Sequence record: NC_061451.1
Length of the DNA stretch: 64,000 nucleotides
Direction: 5' to 3' (one strand)
The notes beneath the pieces were generated by a model. That model saw only the letters and a program-made list of their open reading frames with translations, was not told where the DNA came from and did no database searches. The stretch's first letter is position 1. Every line of letters starts with the position of its first letter. Shown in pieces: positions 6,077-59,410 of the stretch. A program made the translations under genes and the position numbers.

Positions 6077-6889
6077 ATGTCACTCGTAAAACTTCAAGGC
6101 GTCCCGTCCTTGTCCGCGCCTACCAAGGCCCAGAAAGATGCAGCTATCTATATGTTTGGCTCTAAAGGCCATTCTATCGTTGCTGTGTTGGATAAATTCA
6201 GTCGTGCCAAAGAAGTGCGTGCACCGCATCTCGATGGCCTGTTGAAGCTGATGAAGGAAGGCGAAGATGATGAGATCATCAAATTCGTTTCATCTGCTGC
6301 TGGTAAGAAAGCTCTGGCTAACGCGAAAGCATTCGCCGTTGCAAAGACACTGACCGCAAGCATCAAAGCGCTTAAACTGATTCGCGTTCCGATGAAGTGG
6401 ATCGACGGTCACTCGGATGTTGCTGCTGCACGCAACGAAGAAACCAAAGAGATTCGCGCACGCAAGACTGCTGGCAATCGTCCTGAAAAGCCTATCAAGC
6501 TCGATAACCCGCAAGCGCCTGCGCCTGTTACTCCTAAGGCCAAGCCTGTTCACATCCCGTCTGGCAAGTCTGCTGATACGCTGGTGGATGAGATGGGCGA
6601 TATTCCTGCGCGTAAGATCTCAGGCAAGAGTATGCAACAGCGTGAGGAATATTTGAATGCTCTGGGCTTCGTTATCCAGCGCAATATTCCGCGTGCAAAA
6701 GTCAACGTCTCTGCTGACAGCGTTATGGTAACTAAAGGCTCCAAGATTTATACCATTGCACTGACGCCACAAGCGTGGACGCTGCAAGAAGGTGTGACTA
6801 AGAAGCCTAAGCGCATCGGCACAACGTTCGACGTTGTTTCCATACTGTCTGCGATTGATTCTTCCTTCGCGCCTGTACTGATGAAGTAA
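6077..6889 (+). CDS. Lys/Ala/Pro-rich basic hypothetical protein
   Basis: 270 aa, GAGG RBS, central KPIK/APAPVTPKAKP linker. Confidence 0.8.
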   Translation: MSLVKLQGVPSLSAPTKAQKDAAIYMFGSKGHSIVAVLDKFSRAKEVRAPHLDGLLKLMKEGEDDEIIKFVSSAAGKKALANAKAFAVAKTLTASIKALKLIRVPMKWIDGHSDVAAARNEETKEIRARKTAGNRPEKPIKLDNPQAPAPVTPKAKPVHIPSGKSADTLVDEMGDIPARKISGKSMQQREEYLNALGFVIQRNIPRAKVNVSADSVMVTKGSKIYTIALTPQAWTLQEGVTKKPKRIGTTFDVVSILSAIDSSFAPVLMK

Positions 6890-6893
6890 CAAC

Positions 6894-6922
6894 AAAAGGG
6901 TGGCCTAAGGGTCGCCCTTTTT
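6894..6922 (+). terminator. Intrinsic terminator
   Basis: AAAAGGGTGGCC-TAA-GGGTCGCCCTTTTT stem with U-tract after stop codon. Confidence 0.8.
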
Positions 6923-7144
6923 CGATCTATTTGCGTGCCAATCGTAAATAACCTTTCCTCTGCGTTGCCTCTCCTACTCCTGCCTCGACGCCCACACGCT
7001 GCATACTCATTCCATTTGTCTCTACTAACTCTGGCTCTAACTCAAAACCTGCCTCAGTTTCCTGCTAACCTGATCGCTAATTCCTATCTGCAAGCCAAGT
7101 TCTTGCATACGCAAATTTGCTATTAGGTTAAGAGGAATATTCCC

Positions 7145-8983
7145 ATGATTGAAGTAAACTGTTTCGCAGATTTACGCACTACCGCTCCAGCAAAGGCTGG
7201 CGACATGGCGTTACTGAAACGTTACTATGACAAAGACAGTTCGTTTCGTGGGGGCGGCTACTTCATCGGCTTTCCGCAGACAAAAGATCTGCCCGCAGAT
7301 GATGGTGGTATCACGGCAGTAGATGCAAACAAAAGTTTCTTCTGGAAGCGTGTTGTGAATGACCCAGAAGAGATTAACCTGTTCCACTTCGGTGGTCGCT
7401 GCGACGGTAAGACAGATGACAGTGACGCGTTCCTGCGTAACTTCATGTGGACGTGTAAGTCTGCTGACGGTAACGACACTATAGGTGTGCGCTTCCCAAC
7501 AGGCACAACGTTGATCAACCCTATCGATCTTACGCACTTGGGTGAGATACCTGTGTTCGCTATCTATGGTGACACACGTTCTGATAAGGGCTGGCGTCCT
7601 CGTGTCAAGCTGATCAGTAACCAAGGCGAAGCTACTGTATTCAAGTTCAATGCACGCCGCACTATTGTTCGTGGTCTGAACTGGAATGGTCAGTGCTATC
7701 CTGTGAAGGACGGCAAGAAGGTAGACGTGTCCACGATCGTGGGTGCTGTCATGCCTGAGCAGCGTTCAAACAATCAGATCTTCCTTGAGAACATCTGTAC
7801 TATGGGTCAGTACATTGGCGTACAGTGCTTCCGTGCTGAGAGCAACGGCGGATCTGCATTGAAGTTCCAAGACACCATCGATACTTCTATCACAGAGATC
7901 TACGGCAGCAAGAGCTATGGTGCTGTGATTGAAGCCAAGTGGTCGAACACAGTGCAGGCCGGCTGGAACCACTCGACTGCTGTGCGCTTAGAGAACGGTA
8001 ACTTCCAGTACGGCTACGGCCCTGCTGTGTTAGACATGCCGCGTATGACTCAGGCGTTCATGAAGAACGTCTGGATTGAACACACGCGCTTCCCAGGTAA
8101 TATGAACGATGGTCAATGGGTGCTTGAAGGTAACTCGATTGAGAGTTCTGACAACCCACTCAATCTGGCCAACACTCGTTGCGTGATCAATGGCTACTAC
8201 TTCCAAGGCGTTGGTACAATGAACTTGGAACGTGCATCAAGCCCTGACAACTGGCTGAGTGGCTACGAGCGCGGCAGCATTCGTACTGAGACGTACGGTA
8301 TCATCATGACCGATTCCTGCTTCCGCGCAGGCTACTACACGGGTTATAAGATTACCAACAATACAGATCAGGACAAATGGTTCTATCTGGGCAGCTACTC
8401 ATTCCCGAAAGTGAATCAAGTGTGGCAGATTGAACTGCTGGGTACTGCACCAAACGTTGTACCGAACACGAAGCTGCAACAGCCTACGCAGATGGACGGC
8501 ATGGGTCGTCGTGTTATCACAATGCAACGCTGCATTTCACCGCAGAAGAAAGTGTATGCCGATATGCACATGGAAGGAACGGACGCAATCGCCGATGTTG
8601 TGTACCAGCGCCTGTGGGAAGACTACGGCAAGGTGTGGGTTAAGCTGAAAGCCAACAGTGGTGATACTATCTTCAACCTGACCACCACTGGTCCAACTCG
8701 TTTCGAAGCAGGTGTTTGTACGTTGTTCAGCGACGGTCCAATTGAATGCGTGGATCCCGTTCTGACCGAGATGACCACCAGTGTCGAAAAGAATCAGAAG
8801 GACTATGCGCGACCTCAGGCTCGTTTCAGTTTGCACAATGGCCTTGCAGGTGTAGGCGCAAACGAGCAGGGTCTCATCACTATTCAAACCAAAGACGCTA
8901 CAGCACCGAAAGATACCACTAAGCCTGCTGGCTATGTGAGTGTCAATATCAACGGTGTTGATCGTCTCTTGCCTTACTACTAA
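7145..8983 (+). CDS. amsF: AmsF/WceF-like exopolysaccharide-modifying protein (tailspike-like beta-helix), lacking N-terminal export signal and head-binding domain
   Basis: Motifs match recalled Erwinia AmsF/Pantoea WceF: GGGYF, FHFGGRCDGKTDDS, FP.GT, WNHSTAVRLEN, WIEH, QARFSLHNGLAGVGANEQG, KPAGYVSVNING...LPYY. Confidence 0.85.
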   Translation: MIEVNCFADLRTTAPAKAGDMALLKRYYDKDSSFRGGGYFIGFPQTKDLPADDGGITAVDANKSFFWKRVVNDPEEINLFHFGGRCDGKTDDSDAFLRNFMWTCKSADGNDTIGVRFPTGTTLINPIDLTHLGEIPVFAIYGDTRSDKGWRPRVKLISNQGEATVFKFNARRTIVRGLNWNGQCYPVKDGKKVDVSTIVGAVMPEQRSNNQIFLENICTMGQYIGVQCFRAESNGGSALKFQDTIDTSITEIYGSKSYGAVIEAKWSNTVQAGWNHSTAVRLENGNFQYGYGPAVLDMPRMTQAFMKNVWIEHTRFPGNMNDGQWVLEGNSIESSDNPLNLANTRCVINGYYFQGVGTMNLERASSPDNWLSGYERGSIRTETYGIIMTDSCFRAGYYTGYKITNNTDQDKWFYLGSYSFPKVNQVWQIELLGTAPNVVPNTKLQQPTQMDGMGRRVITMQRCISPQKKVYADMHMEGTDAIADVVYQRLWEDYGKVWVKLKANSGDTIFNLTTTGPTRFEAGVCTLFSDGPIECVDPVLTEMTTSVEKNQKDYARPQARFSLHNGLAGVGANEQGLITIQTKDATAPKDTTKPAGYVSVNINGVDRLLPYY

Positions 8984-8988
8984 CAGAC

Positions 8989-9007
8989 GAGGGGCGCAAT
9001 GCCCCTC
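8989..9007 (+). terminator. Hairpin/terminator after amsF-like gene
   Basis: GAGGGGC-GCAAT-GCCCCTC perfect stem. Confidence 0.55.
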
Positions 9008-9068
9008 AACTAAGTCAAATCTCTGTACTCTCCCTAACTCAAATAAGATACGCCGCACAGCGTACTAT

Positions 9069-9122
9069 GCACTAATAAGGTCAAAATGACCATTCTCTGC
9101 TATATGCTGCCTATGCTATAAT
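9069..9122 (+). promoter_or_regulatory. Bipartite phage promoter copy 1
   Basis: GCACTAATAAGGTCAAAAT box; TGcTATAAT at 9114-9122; 33 nt from hexamer to -10. Confidence 0.75.
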
Positions 9123-9168
9123 AGTTGCGAGCGCATTGCTCAATACAATCATGCTGAGGAGCATAACA

Positions 9169-9510
9169 ATGAACGCATCTACTTTCGATTTTTCTATCAT
9201 CTGCACCGAGAGCTTCAACATTAATGAGCTGAACAAAATCGCCGTTGAGCTGAACAAGCTGATCACTAACTCGCAGATCAAAATTGAAGCCGCAGAGCTT
9301 GATGATGAAGGCACAGAGTGCATTCTTCTGGCTATCGGCCTCGATGAAGACGGCGAAGAGACTGGCGAGAACGGCTACTCCCTGCATCTGGACAACGGCG
9401 ACTATCAGATCGTATATCTCGGTGTGCCGCATCCTGACTTCGATAAGCACGAACTTGCGACCAGTGACTTCGAGTTGTTCATCAAATCAGTCAACGGCCT
9501 TGAGTTCTAA
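9169..9510 (+). CDS. Acidic hypothetical protein
   Basis: ATG 9169 after GAGGAG. Confidence 0.75.
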   Translation: MNASTFDFSIICTESFNINELNKIAVELNKLITNSQIKIEAAELDDEGTECILLAIGLDEDGEETGENGYSLHLDNGDYQIVYLGVPHPDFDKHELATSDFELFIKSVNGLEF

Positions 9511-9530
9511 TCACTAATCTGGAGTCCAGT

Positions 9531-9884
9531 ATGCGCCCTAACGCCGCAGCACATCTCGCCGCATCTCTTGCCTTGTTTGCGAAACGTAACCGTAGAGCAA
9601 AATTCACTATCTCTACAAAATCGATAATTCAAGCGACTGATATGGGGACTGGTGCCTATATACCTGATCTATTCATTATGCAATTAGACCTAGAGTTGCG
9701 TCTACGTGGTTACATCCTGATTAAACAGGAGGAGACAAACTACATGATAATGAAAGCTAGACCCCGCAATCATGGCCTTCGCATTTCTTCAAATCATATA
9801 GATGAATATATGAACCTGCCTCTTGAAGTAGTCGATCTTCAACTCTCTGAGACGTTGGACACAGAAGACACAGAAGAAGACTAA
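9531..9884 (+). CDS. Hypothetical protein
   Basis: 117 aa ORF, GGAG RBS. Confidence 0.7.
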   Translation: MRPNAAAHLAASLALFAKRNRRAKFTISTKSIIQATDMGTGAYIPDLFIMQLDLELRLRGYILIKQEETNYMIMKARPRNHGLRISSNHIDEYMNLPLEVVDLQLSETLDTEDTEED

Positions 9885-19989: not shown

Positions 19990-20235
19990 ATGCAAGAGAT
20001 AGAAATTCACGGCGAAGTTGAGATCGCCGACCTCATTGATAGCGAGTCAGTGACTAAGGCAATCGAACGTTTTCAACAAAACCCAACCGAACATAATCGT
20101 GTTCGTATGATCGTGGCAATCTCTGAACATGCTTACGATGAAATGGGAATCACTGTTGATATTTGTGGTAATTCAGATAGCGAGGAAGAAAATCATGATG
20201 CGCAACTTCACAGCAATCCTGCCAGTAACCTGTAA
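19990..20235 (+). CDS. Hypothetical protein
   Basis: GAGG RBS, 81 aa. Confidence 0.65.
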   Translation: MQEIEIHGEVEIADLIDSESVTKAIERFQQNPTEHNRVRMIVAISEHAYDEMGITVDICGNSDSEEENHDAQLHSNPASNL

Positions 20236-21334
20236 TGCCGATTGTTCATTCTGCCCTGAGAAAGAAATGGAGCAGAAAGCTACGAACCGCCAGTGGCTGA
20301 CTAATCTCATTGCGCAGATTAATGATCATGCGGGTGAGTTCGACCACGTTTCTATTTCCGGCGGTGAACCTACGCTCAAGCCAAAGTTCCTGTTTGAAGT
20401 GATCGATGCGATTCGCACTCAAACGGATATCGATAAAGTTGGACTCACGTCAAATGGTCGCTTCCTGAATAAGCAAGACAGCATCTTCCAGTTCCTTGAT
20501 CTGAACACAGACGACATGCTGGAAAGCAAGCTGTCCCATCTGAATATCAGCCGTCATTCATTCGACGATGCCAAGAACAACGAGATCATGAAAGTGCGTT
20601 ACACGTACACGCTTGATGACCTCGTGAAGTTTAGACGTCAACTCGGCACAAAGCTGAGCTTCCACATTAACTTTGTTATCAACGAGCACAACATCGATAA
20701 CATTGAGTGGGAGTTTGCCCAGGCTAATCGATTCATGATGGAGAACCCGTGGATCGATGTAGTGTTCCGCGTTGACTATGCGAACGAAAAGCTGAATCGT
20801 CGTCTGCGTCGTTACGGCCTGTCTGTGCAAGCGTGGCGTGATGCAACTCGCGGCTCTATTCGTGAAGAACGCATAGCGCGTGAGAATCTGAAAAAGAAAC
20901 CCAAACTCGTTCAGTTGTTTGATGGCGTGTTCAGCGGCACAACACAGGACAATGACGGTACATTTACCGATGCGTGTCCAAGCTGTTTCGTACATCGCAG
21001 CCAGAAGATTCATAACAACCACGCGTGGCTCAAAGCATCCTCGTACGAACCGAACGTAGACGAAGAGGAATACACTGAGTACGTGTTCCACATGGACGGT
21101 GAGCTTTACTACGACTGGTCGCGTGCTGAGCCTGTGCCTGACGTAGAGAAGAAACCACGCAAACACAAAGCCATTCGCATTGTCCAGAGAGAAGTGGAAG
21201 AAGATGATATGGATGAAGACATTCCTGCATCTTCTCGTATGGGTTGTCAGTATAGAACTGTCGGATGTTCTTACGGTGAATCAGAATCTGCTGGTGGCTG
21301 CTCATTTAGAACTACTGGCAGCTGTAGCTTTTAA
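20195..21334 (+). CDS. Radical SAM enzyme with C-terminal Cys/aromatic repeat tail
   Basis: CNADCSFC (CxxxCxxC), SISGGEPT, GLTSNG, LNISRH, CPSC; start at ATG 20195 after GAGG. Confidence 0.9.
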   Translation: MMRNFTAILPVTCNADCSFCPEKEMEQKATNRQWLTNLIAQINDHAGEFDHVSISGGEPTLKPKFLFEVIDAIRTQTDIDKVGLTSNGRFLNKQDSIFQFLDLNTDDMLESKLSHLNISRHSFDDAKNNEIMKVRYTYTLDDLVKFRRQLGTKLSFHINFVINEHNIDNIEWEFAQANRFMMENPWIDVVFRVDYANEKLNRRLRRYGLSVQAWRDATRGSIREERIARENLKKKPKLVQLFDGVFSGTTQDNDGTFTDACPSCFVHRSQKIHNNHAWLKASSYEPNVDEEEYTEYVFHMDGELYYDWSRAEPVPDVEKKPRKHKAIRIVQREVEEDDMDEDIPASSRMGCQYRTVGCSYGESESAGGCSFRTTGSCSF

Positions 21335-54918: not shown

Positions 54919-54989
54919 ACATATAGGACAAGTAGTGTCTGAATATGCTAATATCGAGTGGTCAACGCTACTCATTAGGAGAAACGAAA

Positions 54990-57014
54990 ATGGCGAAAAC
55001 GCCTAAAGCCGCAAAAGTCAAAAAGGGTGACGGCTCCCAAGATGGCTTCACTATCGCAGAAGGCCTCGACGGTATAAGATTGAATCCCGGCATGTACATG
55101 GGTCAACAGGGCGCGGACATGGCGTATCGCGCTGTGAAAGAACCTGTGGACAATGACTACGATGAATACATCGCAGGTCGTAACAAGTTGATCGAAGTGG
55201 TCATTGATTACGATAGCGACCTGAACATCGTAGCTGACCAAGCAGGCGGCATTCCTACCGACTTCAAGAAACTGAAAGACGGTACGAAAGAAACGATCAT
55301 GACCGCAGCGTTTAGCCGTGTTCATGCGGGTGGTAAATTCAACGATCAGGCATATAAGACCTCTGCTGGTACACACGGTGTAGGTGTAGCTGCACTGAAC
55401 GCAATCTCCAGTCAGTTGCGTGTGTGGTCAATGTACAAAGGCAGTTGCGCTTATCAGATGTGGCAATGCGGCGAAGTCAAGTCTGGCAAAGACCCTAAGA
55501 AAGTCAAGACCATCGACAAAGACGTTATGAGCCTGTTGCGCGATAAGAAGCACAGCAAGTACGGTACTGTGGTAGCGTGGACGCTTGACCAGACCGTTGT
55601 GTCTGCTGATGCACAGCGTGGTAAGAAGCTGCCTAAGAACTACCGTCACGCTGCTCCTAATCCAGCTCAGCTTGGCGAGTGGCTGCGTAACATGTCAATG
55701 CTCAACCCAGGCCTTGAGATTCGCCTGACGTTGATCAAGAAGGGCAAGCGCAAAGAGTTCACGTTCATCAACAAGAAAGACCTGAACTATGTTGTGAAGA
55801 CTATGTGTGAAGAACGCGAGCTGGGTACTGTCGGCAAGCCGTTCATCTTCAAGTCTGACAATATCACGGCTGCGCTCGTCTGGACAGATCATGCAGACAC
55901 CGACAACTTCCTCAGTTTCGTTAACACCAGCCCAACAGTTGACGGCGGGTGGCATGTAGTAGGTTTCCGTGATGCTCTGTTTGATGCAATCAAGCCGTTC
56001 ATGAAAGAACCGAAAGGTAAGGGCAAGAAAAAGCAGGGCTTCAAACAAGAAGACTTGTTGATTGGCCTGACCGGTATGTTCGACTGGCGTATGCACGGTG
56101 CTCAATACACCTCGCAGGTAAAAGACAAGCTGGCCAGCCGCGTCGAGAAAGACGTGTACGAAATGCTGAAAGATGCTTTCGTGAAATACTTCAAGGACAA
56201 TAAGAAGGTCGCTACGACAATCATCAAACGTGCCGAAGCGATGAACAAGGGACGTGAAGAACTCAGCGCTGTCGTTAAGTCTATGGCTGACACGAAGAAG
56301 AAGCTGAAAGGTAACGCACTGCCTGCCGACCTCGTTGTCGCAAACAAGTGTAAGCCGCATGAGCGCGAGCTTGTCGTGGTGGAAGGGGATTCTGCTGGTG
56401 GTACTGCGAAAGATGCGCGTAACCCTGACTATCAGGAAGTTATGAAAGCTGGTGGTAAGCCGCTGAACGGTCTGAAAGCAAGTCTGGCTGACGTGCTCAA
56501 GCACAAAGAAGTGCAGGGTATGCTGGTGAGTATCGGTGCTGACCTGAAATCACTTGACCCGAAAGCAGAAGCGCCAAAGTTGAGCACGAAGAATCTGCGT
56601 ATCGGCAACATCCTGTTCCTTGCTGATGCTGACCCCGATGGCTTCCACATCAACGTGCTGTTCCTCGGCGTTATCTATCGCTTGCTGCCTGACTTGATGA
56701 AAGAAGGCCGTGTGTGGATTGTTGATGCACCGCTGTACAACGTTATTCATCAAGGCAAACACTACGGTGGTATGACGTTTGAAGAATGCCGTGCTAAAGC
56801 GCCGTCTGCTGTAAAAGACAAAGACATTGTACGCGCCAAAGGTTGGGGTGAAGTTGAACCTGACGTGCTTGAAGCAATCGCGTTCAATCCGAAAACTCGT
56901 CGTCTCATTCGTGTTAACCCGTTTGAGAACGTCGAGCAGGAACGTTTCTTTAGAGGTGTAGTTGCAGAAGATGCAGTTCACCGTCGTCGCTTGCTCGGTC
57001 TGGAGGCAGCATGA
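54990..57014 (+). CDS. gyrB: Type IIA DNA topoisomerase B subunit (GyrB/ParE-like: GHKL ATPase plus TOPRIM)
   Basis: IRLNPGMY, EPVDN..DE, HAGGKF, GTHGVGV, VEGDSA, DADPDG.HI, KGWGE; ATG 54990 after AGGAG. Confidence 0.92.
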   Translation: MAKTPKAAKVKKGDGSQDGFTIAEGLDGIRLNPGMYMGQQGADMAYRAVKEPVDNDYDEYIAGRNKLIEVVIDYDSDLNIVADQAGGIPTDFKKLKDGTKETIMTAAFSRVHAGGKFNDQAYKTSAGTHGVGVAALNAISSQLRVWSMYKGSCAYQMWQCGEVKSGKDPKKVKTIDKDVMSLLRDKKHSKYGTVVAWTLDQTVVSADAQRGKKLPKNYRHAAPNPAQLGEWLRNMSMLNPGLEIRLTLIKKGKRKEFTFINKKDLNYVVKTMCEERELGTVGKPFIFKSDNITAALVWTDHADTDNFLSFVNTSPTVDGGWHVVGFRDALFDAIKPFMKEPKGKGKKKQGFKQEDLLIGLTGMFDWRMHGAQYTSQVKDKLASRVEKDVYEMLKDAFVKYFKDNKKVATTIIKRAEAMNKGREELSAVVKSMADTKKKLKGNALPADLVVANKCKPHERELVVVEGDSAGGTAKDARNPDYQEVMKAGGKPLNGLKASLADVLKHKEVQGMLVSIGADLKSLDPKAEAPKLSTKNLRIGNILFLADADPDGFHINVLFLGVIYRLLPDLMKEGRVWIVDAPLYNVIHQGKHYGGMTFEECRAKAPSAVKDKDIVRAKGWGEVEPDVLEAIAFNPKTRRLIRVNPFENVEQERFFRGVVAEDAVHRRRLLGLEAA

Positions 57015-57748: not shown

Positions 57749-59410
57749 ATGCCAATCAAACCTAAGAAAGTCAAAGCGGCCAAAGCAGTTAAGCCTGCTA
57801 AAGCGACCGCCGTTGCAAAGCCACTTAAAGTCAAAGTGAAGTCGAAAGCCGTTTCTGTCGATGACATTAAGACGAAGAAAAAGTCGAAAGAAGTCGCCAC
57901 AGTGCAGACAGGCGCATCGCTCTATCCGATGATTGGTCAAGACGAATCGAACATTCGTGATCAGGGCCTCGCAGATTACACACGCCACGCGCTGGGTGTG
58001 TACGGTTCTTACGTTGTTGAAGACCGTGCTATCGCTGACTATCGTGATGGCCTCAAGCCTGTGCACCGTGCGCTGCTGTGGTCGTTGTCTGATCTTAACT
58101 TGCGTCCTGGCGGTGCGTTCAAGAAGTCTGCGCGTACTGTTGGTGACACGATTGGTAAGTATCACCCGCACGGCGATGCAGCCTGCTACGGCGCAATGGT
58201 AACGATTGCAAACACAGTGCCCCCAGCTGTTGCGGGTTCTGGTAACTGGGGTAGCCCTGTTGACCCTGCTGCTGCGATGCGTTATACCGAAGCGAAGATG
58301 AGTAAGTTCACGGGCACGTTCTTGCTCGACTCTGATTACTTAGAAGTTGTGCCGCGTGTGCCTAACTTCTCAAACGATCTTGAGCTGCCGCTTTACTTGC
58401 CTGCTCTGTTGCCGTACATGTTGTTCAATGGCTCTGTGCCTGCACCAGCGTACGGCGTTAAGTGTGGCAACCCGTCATTCAGCTTCACGTCCGTATCTAA
58501 AGTCGTGTGTGAGATGCTGAGCGGCAAAGAGTACACAGCGAAGACGCTGGCGAAGACGCTTGAGATTCGCCATGAGTTCGGCTGTATCGACGTTAGCTCT
58601 GACGAAGATATGTACCAGCTTATCTCAACAGGCCGTGGCAAAGTCACATACGAACCGCTGATTAAGATCGATGAGAAGTCGAAGACCATCACGATTCAAA
58701 CGTATGTGCCTGCTGGCATGTCCAATACTGCGGGTATCACTAAGAAGCTGGAGAAGATTTCTGAGTGGCCAGGCATTAGCTCCGCAGCAAACGCCAGTGG
58801 CAAGAAGAACAAGAACGCAGGTCCTTACGGTGCAGCGTTTGAGTTCCGCGTACGTGGTAGTGAAGACCAGTTGTACGAACTCGCCTCACGCATTCAGAAG
58901 GAAGTGACTGCTGGCGTCAACTACAATCTGGGCGTTACGATTCGTCGCGCCGATAAGCCGAACACCTTCAAGTATCTGAACTATCTGGATTACTTCAAGG
59001 CGTGGGTAGCGTATCGTATCAAACTCGAAACAGCCATGCTGAACAACAAGCTGGCCAAAGCAGAGAAAGCCCTGCACTTGCAGCAAGTTTATCTGTGGGC
59101 AGTTGACAACATGAAGCAACTGCTGGCAGCCTTGCCTAAAGTGTTAGTCGCAGAAGATCCAGACAAAGCGCTGGCCAAAGCGTGCAAGATTCCAGTTGAA
59201 GATGCGAAGATCATCCTCGACCGTCAAGTGCGTAAGCTCGCCAAGCTGGAACGTGGTGGTCTGATTGCCAAAATCAAAGACATTAAGGAAGAGATTGCTG
59301 GATATAAGGCAGGCTTGAAAGCGCCAGGCAAATATGCAGCACAGAGCACGGCTGCTAAAGTCAAAGCGTACATCAAATCACCTGATGATAAGCTGCCCGT
59401 AAGTCTTTGA
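57749..59410 (+). CDS. gyrA: Type IIA DNA topoisomerase A subunit (GyrA/ParC-like, no C-terminal pinwheel)
   Basis: RAIADYRDGLKPVHR, KSARTVG, KYHPHGD, AAMRYTE (catalytic Tyr). Confidence 0.92.
   Translation: MPIKPKKVKAAKAVKPAKATAVAKPLKVKVKSKAVSVDDIKTKKKSKEVATVQTGASLYPMIGQDESNIRDQGLADYTRHALGVYGSYVVEDRAIADYRDGLKPVHRALLWSLSDLNLRPGGAFKKSARTVGDTIGKYHPHGDAACYGAMVTIANTVPPAVAGSGNWGSPVDPAAAMRYTEAKMSKFTGTFLLDSDYLEVVPRVPNFSNDLELPLYLPALLPYMLFNGSVPAPAYGVKCGNPSFSFTSVSKVVCEMLSGKEYTAKTLAKTLEIRHEFGCIDVSSDEDMYQLISTGRGKVTYEPLIKIDEKSKTITIQTYVPAGMSNTAGITKKLEKISEWPGISSAANASGKKNKNAGPYGAAFEFRVRGSEDQLYELASRIQKEVTAGVNYNLGVTIRRADKPNTFKYLNYLDYFKAWVAYRIKLETAMLNNKLAKAEKALHLQQVYLWAVDNMKQLLAALPKVLVAEDPDKALAKACKIPVEDAKIILDRQVRKLAKLERGGLIAKIKDIKEEIAGYKAGLKAPGKYAAQSTAAKVKAYIKSPDDKLPVSL

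Follow-up and report, generated by a model that had tools for sequence, protein, structure and literature searches.

WceF of Pantoea stewartii is a proven stewartan hydrolase that cleaves exopolysaccharide (EPS), and its published domain limits comprise a twin-arginine translocation (Tat) signal (residues 1-28), a P22-like head (34-146), a neck (166-229) and a beta-helix (236-514), followed by the triple beta-helix, the beta-sandwich and the stem up to residue 736 (PMC7949094). Virion-borne EPS depolymerases of Erwinia and Pantoea phages, such as DpoL1 (gp17 of phage L1) and the PhiEa1h, S2 and Rexella types, are 650-1218 aa long, carry N-terminal particle-binding parts and are encoded in tail modules, where L1 gp17 lies between gp16 and the holin. 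The likeness of this family to AmsF and WceF is already known (PMC10194208, PMC7949094), and free phage depolymerases are a known category. Here we report the analysis of a further family member, encoded at positions 7145-8983 of a 64,000-nucleotide stretch of sequence record NC_061451.1 (the window), which starts at the neck domain and is encoded among non-structural phage genes. We propose, with a probability of roughly 0.6, that its product is a headless and signal-less beta-helix glycosidase that would act as a free enzyme released at lysis and would not be built into the virion.

The window is a stretch of a jumbo phage of Erwinia amylovora. Its nucleotides 7145-8983 are 100% identical to the phages pEa_SNUABM_7 and pEa_SNUABM_14 of the genus Snuvirus, whose genomes are about 265 kb long; a sequence-only reading of the window had earlier pointed to an Erwinia or Pantoea host, and Erwinia is supported. 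The open reading frame (ORF) is intact and begins at the first start codon past an in-frame stop, which leaves no possible upstream in-frame extension, and it is preceded by a good ribosome-binding site (RBS), AAGAGGA, at 7130-7136. The annotation as an EPS depolymerase already exists and is not new: in RefSeq, the gene of both phages is labelled gp255 'EPS depolymerase'. It is the single family member in the phage genome, with one place per record in our search.

7145..8983, + strand: coding sequence (612 aa) for the headless EPS depolymerase, a member of the AmsF/WceF/phage-tailspike beta-helix family, supported by ORF, profile, structure-sequence and fold matches

The depolymerase matches the profile phrog_4250 'EPS depolymerase' with E=4e-196, covering only profile positions 150-725 of 786, and positions 1-149 have no counterpart in the protein. 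Its precomputed Pfam match is PF27114 Phage_tail_beta only; a local Pfam-A scan of the 612-aa protein returned no family, the local copy probably lacking this model, and an NCBIfam search gave no meaningful match. The likeness to AmsF and WceF along the whole protein, proposed in the sequence-only reading, was borne out by the match to WceF (PDB 6TGF; E=6e-76), which aligns query residues 4-612 with chain residues 170-732. In the AlphaFold model, with a predicted local distance difference test score (pLDDT) of 78, the top fold match is again 6TGF (E=2e-35), with phage tailspike depolymerases next. Fold matches among viral models are EPS depolymerases of Erwinia, Pantoea and Xanthomonas phages, and the top ones are all 650-1218 aa long. 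Because the alignment to WceF opens at residue 170 and the neck of WceF spans residues 166-229, the depolymerase starts at the neck domain, and it retains every WceF domain from the neck onward, with the following approximate layout.

7145..7342, + strand: neck domain at the start of the protein, about residues 1-66 (WceF 166-229), placed by the 6TGF alignment and the limits in PMC7949094
7361..8290, + strand: right-handed parallel beta-helix, about residues 73-382 (WceF 236-514), placed by the 6TGF alignment and the model
8297..8980, + strand: C-terminal trimerisation/binding part with the triple beta-helix (about 385-399), beta-sandwich (about 399-535) and stem (about 558-612), placed by the 6TGF alignment

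The segments of low pLDDT, 372-397 and 561-582, coincide with places of the WceF trimer at which its chains are intertwined. At the other end of the protein, neither a Tat-type RR motif nor a hydrophobic stretch is found in the first 60 residues, and the P22-tailspike-like head domain (PF09008) is absent, the WceF alignment beginning at residue 170; the earlier statement that the protein has no Tat signal and no head-binding N-domain thus holds. The depolymerase therefore shares with WceF, its best fold match, the architecture of neck, beta-helix, triple beta-helix, beta-sandwich and stem, but differs from it in having no Tat signal and no P22-like head, in lying outside an EPS biosynthesis cluster, in an identity of 30-37% and in about 20 inserted residues near 183-203. 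With the virion-borne depolymerases it has in common the same PHROG (phrog_4250), the fold, the host genus and presumably the same EPS, whereas it is without profile positions 1-149, is 27-33% identical to them and is encoded among non-structural genes. The operon-encoded type of AmsF/WceF is represented by a 739-aa protein (P0122) encoded between glycosyltransferases in a Wza-Wzb-Wzc cluster, in which KRREVL and a hydrophobic region form a Tat-type signal and which has the domain PF09008 Head_binding in addition to PF27114. It is 35-37% identical to the depolymerase, the same range as that of the depolymerase of phage Kyle.

Residue conservation was compared across the family, including L1 gp17, the proteins of phages RAY and Kyle and operon-type AmsF. 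Seven residues conserved family-wide, D243, D246, H276, E312, H313, E333 and E375, are kept in the depolymerase, and all of them lie within the beta-helix; the WceF paper names no catalytic residues (PMC7949094). Because these residues and the full C-terminal trimerisation part are present, the protein is expected to be an active trimeric glycosidase, and its substrate, judged by host and family, would be an amylovoran-type EPS. The ratio of nonsynonymous to synonymous substitution rates (dN/dS) between phage copies is 0.10-0.17, pointing to purifying selection, and the Snuvirus copies differ by about 2% in DNA and by no more than 0.7% in protein sequence.

The depolymerase belongs to a group of proteins, here termed the headless clade, that start at the neck domain with the residues MIEVN, are 580-615 aa long and have no signal peptide, and it shows all of these features. 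The MIEVN start is common to all 120 headless sequences aligned, with conserved N-terminal sequence beyond it, and the match begins at query residue 1 in all 80 bacterial genome loci described below as well as in the closely related viral loci. The members come from three virulent phage lineages and from chromosomes of Erwiniaceae. In the neighbor-joining (NJ) analysis, the headless clade was monophyletic in 100 of 100 bootstraps, as was its phage subgroup. Its sister in the NJ tree is a group containing phage Kyle, not operon-type AmsF, to which RAY groups nearer, at 39-42% identity between the two. Inside the headless clade, two bacterial groups and the phage group form a near-trichotomy with an internal branch of 0.004; no arrangement of the three reaches 40% bootstrap support under two distance corrections, and the bacterial copies were not monophyletic in 75 of 100 bootstraps. 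Since the place of the phage group relative to the bacterial groups is poorly supported, the direction of transfer is not readable from the tree. Nesting in a bacterial clade, for which the sequence-only reading had proposed a phylogeny as a check, was thus not found with respect to operon-encoded sequences, with which there is no grouping, and within the headless clade the tree leaves it at the bootstrap level just given. Any capture would be an old one, because the composition of the gene matches the phage and its position is kept in relatives at 67-80% protein identity. Published views on direction differ: the authors on WceF speculate about transfer from phage to bacterium (PMC7949094), whereas those on phage phiEaP-8 proposed in 2018 that their homologue was captured from the host, that is, transferred from bacterium to phage (PMC6200048). 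Three points appear to be new here, as no description of them was found in the literature searched: where the limits of the headless MIEVN clade lie, that it turns up, outside tail modules, in three phage lineages, and that it is linked to a conserved repressor, antiterminator and lysis cassette in chromosomes of Erwiniaceae. For the phage itself, the literature search yielded a review only, and no proteome of Snuvirus or Yoloswagvirus was found.

Among phages, the genera Snuvirus and Yoloswagvirus, related jumbo phages and metagenomic contigs encode homologues with 64-100% identity to the depolymerase, followed by phiEaP-8-type N4-like podoviruses and uncultivated phages of 172-176 kb at 60-63%. 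Outside the headless clade, all other relatives, both AmsF/WceF of the operon-encoded type and the classical depolymerases of phages (L1 gp17, RAY gp76, Kyle gp14) included, are at 27-37%. In the jumbo phages, the gene lies after the SSB and UvsX genes, among small ORFs of no assigned function. Yoloswag and a metagenomic relative with 67% identity have the gene at the same place, behind the UvsX-like recombinase, and protein identity across the jumbo relatives is 67-100%. No structural PHROG or Pfam matches were found among the neighbours of the gene. A separate head or anchor supplied by the upstream ORFs was considered and rejected, the neighbouring 270-aa and 219-aa ORFs having no Pfam or PHROG match. 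In the N4-like phage phiEaP-8, the homologue is located downstream of replication genes and tRNAs. A third, uncultivated lineage (IMG/VR contigs L101 and L102; 172-176 kb) encodes a 600-aa headless homologue with 62-63% identity (L101:8001-9803), which has primase, exonuclease, thymidylate synthase (ThyA) and ligase genes on one side and a DNA polymerase gene on the other. The gene context, with genes of replication or nucleotide metabolism, is therefore non-structural in three of three virulent phage lineages, in agreement with the earlier description of a stand-alone gene, outside any tail module.

The homologues named 'AmsF-like' in phiEaP-8 (gp24), gp246 of Yoloswag and those of pEa_SNUABM_5 and pEa_SNUABM_30 are likewise members of the headless clade, with the MIEVN start, a length of 599-615 aa and a stand-alone gene, and are 60-81% identical to the depolymerase. 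Phage phiEaP-8 differs in being an unrelated N4-like podovirus, which implies that the gene has moved between phage lineages; the region upstream of its gene is not common to the jumbo phage. Proteins of the jumbo Erwinia phages RAY (gp76) and Ea35-70 and of Pantoea phage Kyle (gp14) are also about 610-640 aa long, have little N-terminal extension and are encoded among hypothetical genes, but with 30-36% identity to the depolymerase they belong to other branches of the family. Every relative seen has an intact ORF, and both the GC content of the gene and that of its third codon positions (GC3) are inside the range of the other window genes. Taken with the kept position and the selection estimates above, the gene appears to be old in the jumbo phage lineage and under constraint.

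The chromosomal headless proteins are found in Erwinia, Pantoea, Duffyella, Mixta, Izhakiella and Kalamiella, are 581-612 aa long and share 41-52% identity with the depolymerase. Their database name is 'amylovoran biosynthesis protein AmsF' (e.g. P0026, P0028, P0039 and P0064), probably as a result of annotation transfer by similarity: among the loci examined, no headless copy was located in an EPS operon. For P0039, the copy with the label E. amylovora, there is a record from one assembly only. Five bacterial contexts were read gene by gene, and PHROG scans agreed with their labels:

Assembly labelled E. amylovora: repressor, Q antiterminator and lysozyme precede the headless gene
E. pyri and E. 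aphidicola: two holins precede the headless gene, with a CI-type repressor in E. pyri only
P. stewartii: S24 repressor, N-like antiterminator, endolysin, holin and spanin precede the headless gene
Duffyella: holin, lysozyme and LysC upstream of the headless gene, and a colicin-M-domain protein downstream

The same kind of context was then counted by tblastn with reference cassette proteins within about 4 kb upstream of 80 loci, obtained by scanning one genome per species, all of which were from Erwiniaceae and all headless:

Endolysin near the headless gene: 75 of 80 loci
N/Q antiterminator near the headless gene: 73 of 80 loci
Holin near the headless gene: 71 of 80 loci
Repressor near the headless gene: 70 of 80 loci

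At least one lysis gene was nearby in 78 of the 80 loci. The matches were nearly always on the same strand as the headless gene, and those to endolysin, antiterminator and repressor were mostly full length. The resulting cassette order is S24 or helix-turn-helix (HTH) repressor, N- or Q-like antiterminator, endolysin, holin, spanin and headless depolymerase (example L005:5086-9749). From the contexts at these loci, the closest cellular relatives of the phage gene belong to phage-derived lysis cassettes as their cargo and are not genes of EPS biosynthesis.

These observations favour the free enzyme released at lysis, because the protein lacks both a signal peptide and any known anchor and its gene stands among non-structural neighbours, and because the corresponding bacterial ORF is coupled to lysis genes. 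For the headless protein in the chromosomal cassettes, where no virion exists, lysis is the only evident exit. The soluble release of the phage enzyme, to which the missing anchor and the gene context point, would proceed as follows. The depolymerase would be made in the cytoplasm during infection, where it meets no substrate; cell lysis would free the accumulated enzyme, which would strip EPS off neighbouring cells and debris, and this stripping would let the progeny phages, themselves without a virion-borne enzyme of the family, reach the cell surface. It is compatible with such a free enzyme that the N-terminal part of DpoL1 of phage L1 is given as dispensable for activity (Born 2014 as cited in PMC10194208). 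Several points weigh against this proposal. For this protein and the rest of the headless clade, expression, localisation and activity are predictions, and an amylovoran-type substrate is deduced from host and family. Some tailspikes dock via short N-terminal or neck-like modules, and a missing known anchor is no proof of absence from the virion. In jumbo phages, structural genes are scattered, which makes a place among replication genes weak evidence. Moreover, head-less constructs of WceF aggregated (PMC7949094), so that a stable soluble trimer cannot be taken for granted in a headless form; the conservation of the headless clade argues for proper folding despite this.

In a rival view, the depolymerase would itself be a virion-associated tailspike, mounted on the baseplate or another fibre via its neck or an unrecognised adaptor, and would digest EPS at adsorption as DpoL1 does. 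The family as a whole is dominated by tailspikes, the homologue of pEa_SNUABM_5 is annotated as a 'tail spike associated glycoside hydrolase', residues 4-93 weakly match 'tail fiber protein' PHROGs, and the neck is similar to an insert that the branched tailspikes of phage CBA120 have ahead of their beta-helix (PMC7949094). We nevertheless consider this arrangement rather unlikely, given that there is no anchor domain, with both phrog_4250 positions 1-149 and the P22-type head missing, that the gene stands outside the tail module in all three phage lineages, that its neighbours are without structural-protein signatures, and that the identical ORF architecture recurs in chromosomal lysis cassettes that have no virion. 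A role without catalysis, either as a lectin-like EPS-binding protein or as a decaying relic with no part in infection, seems very improbable. It could draw on the slow activity of WceF, which clusters with stewartan in a lectin-like way (PMC7949094), and on the lack of defined catalytic residues for the family; however, the intact ORF in every relative seen, the dN/dS of 0.10-0.17, the retention of all family-wide conserved acidic and His positions and a genome position that stays the same among jumbo relatives of 67-100% identity all speak against it.

The remaining explanation concerns origin. The sequence-only reading saw in the gene a domesticated host EPS-operon gene, that is, a cellular AmsF/WceF gene of the ams/wce operon that a phage had captured and whose Tat signal and head domain had been trimmed. 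Full-length family-level homology to WceF and the name 'AmsF' of the nearest bacterial homologues in the databases agree with such a history, as does the suggestion made for the phiEaP-8 homologue (PMC6200048), and the non-monophyly of the bacterial headless copies in 75 of 100 bootstraps leaves room for a bacterial source. Nevertheless, the operon-type protein, at 35-37% identity, is not the sister of the headless clade in the NJ tree, and the closer bacterial relatives that bear the name 'AmsF' are located in phage-type lysis cassettes, not in EPS operons. The MIEVN start in all 120 headless sequences implies that the trimming predates the split between phage and bacterial copies, there is no compositional trace of a recent transfer, the synteny among the jumbo relatives is old, the E. 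amylovora-labelled headless copy occurs in a single assembly, and the authors on WceF prefer a phage-to-bacterium transfer (PMC7949094). We therefore regard capture from an EPS operon as improbable. The earlier interpretation is thus supported in part: its description of a stand-alone, headless depolymerase is right, whereas its claim of a domesticated operon gene is not supported.

The free enzyme released at lysis, as proposed for the phage gene, would have a cellular counterpart in the Erwiniaceae cassette. We tentatively suggest, as a possibility that falls short of our preferred account of the phage protein, that this cassette is lambdoid-prophage-derived and serves the regulated, lysis-dependent (type-10-like) release of an EPS-degrading enzyme, and that it is a mobile module exchanged with the three virulent phage lineages that use the free enzyme. 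No paper describing an Erwiniaceae depolymerase lysis cassette was found in the literature searched. The nearest analogue of the bacterial relatives, although not of the phage gene, is the type 10 lysis-cassette release outlined for Yersinia entomophaga (PMC10847048). Both arrangements place phage-derived holin, endolysin and spanin genes beside the gene of a signal-less exoprotein in a bacterial chromosome, whereas here the cargo would be an EPS depolymerase, genes for a lambdoid-type repressor and an N/Q antiterminator are present, and the system is known from its genes alone. If the suggestion is true, the cassette may serve biofilm dispersal or competition, and 'AmsF' would be a misnomer for the headless chromosomal proteins. 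The cassette was seen in 80 species-representative Erwiniaceae genomes, some of which contain 2-3 copies. In the Duffyella-type cassette, the depolymerase gene is followed by one whose product has a colicin M domain, PF14859 (L006:10044-10856, L129:12039-12851), and by a small ORF that could be an immunity gene, which suggests that the cassette may release a bacteriocin as well.

For the phage, the proposed free enzyme indicates how a jumbo fire-blight phage without a spike-borne enzyme of this family may cope with the amylovoran capsule, and it draws attention to a compact depolymerase that would need no anchor. For the bacteria, tailspike-like EPS glycosidases of Erwiniaceae appear in at least two cellular deployments, namely a Tat-exported form with a head, encoded in EPS operons, and a headless form in lysis cassettes, the latter being tied to the phage gene pool by a clade of identical ORF boundaries. 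The name 'AmsF' of the closest chromosomal proteins, and the story of a captured host gene drawn from that name, are misleading.

The flanks of the depolymerase gene contain two hairpins and a long leader:

6894..6921, + strand: terminator hairpin of the preceding gene with a 12-bp stem and a 4-nt loop, then a U-run (-19.1 kcal/mol, z -4.4)
6922..7144, + strand: non-coding leader of about 220 nt, unusually long, with a pyrimidine-rich tract, between the terminator and the start codon
8989..9007, + strand: GC-rich hairpin 6 nt past the stop codon, with a 7-bp stem, a 5-nt loop and no U-run (-15.4 kcal/mol, z -4.7)

Both hairpins between which the sequence-only reading had placed the gene exist, but only in part are they its own. 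The upstream one terminates the preceding gene, recurs in Yoloswag and the metagenomic relative L017, and marks the 5' boundary of the transcription unit of the depolymerase; the downstream one is missing in Yoloswag, where the next gene begins 14 nt after the stop codon. Within the leader, a 16-nt block, CCAATCRTAAATAACC (6938-6953), is identical in three jumbo relatives and absent from phiEaP-8 and from the bacterial loci. With one exact copy in the 64-kb window, it was ruled out as a recurrent phage promoter. A small leader hairpin at 7089-7107 keeps its pairing via differing stem sequences in three relatives, at a weak energy of -5.4 kcal/mol. The 236-nt leader fold has a z of -2.5 with the RBS region paired, a result from three sequences only that is merely suggestive and on which no claim is based. 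An imperfect 36-nt inverted repeat (7059-7094 / 7102-7137) would also pair with the RBS. No match was returned by a sigma-70 promoter scan upstream of the depolymerase gene, and nothing above noise by an Rfam search of 6500-9600. An extended -10-like element, TGCTATAAT, is located at 9113-9121, about 48 nt ahead of the next gene (9169-9510); being without a -35 match, it was not reported by the promoter scan.

Among the ten large window ORFs scanned, no structural genes were recognised, and the rest of the window consists of DNA-metabolism and unassigned genes. The 354-aa protein encoded at 2792-3856 matches phrog_6160, which has no assigned function, and its homologue in L017 has a precomputed match to PF26125 'AcrVA2-like', making it a possible anti-CRISPR-like gene. 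A 401-aa protein (20129-21334) has an N-terminal radical S-adenosylmethionine (radical-SAM) domain (PHROG E=1e-9 to 4e-6). Finally, the genes for the large subunit and a second subunit of topoisomerase II are located at 54945-57014 and 57749-59410, with about 730 bp of small ORFs between them.

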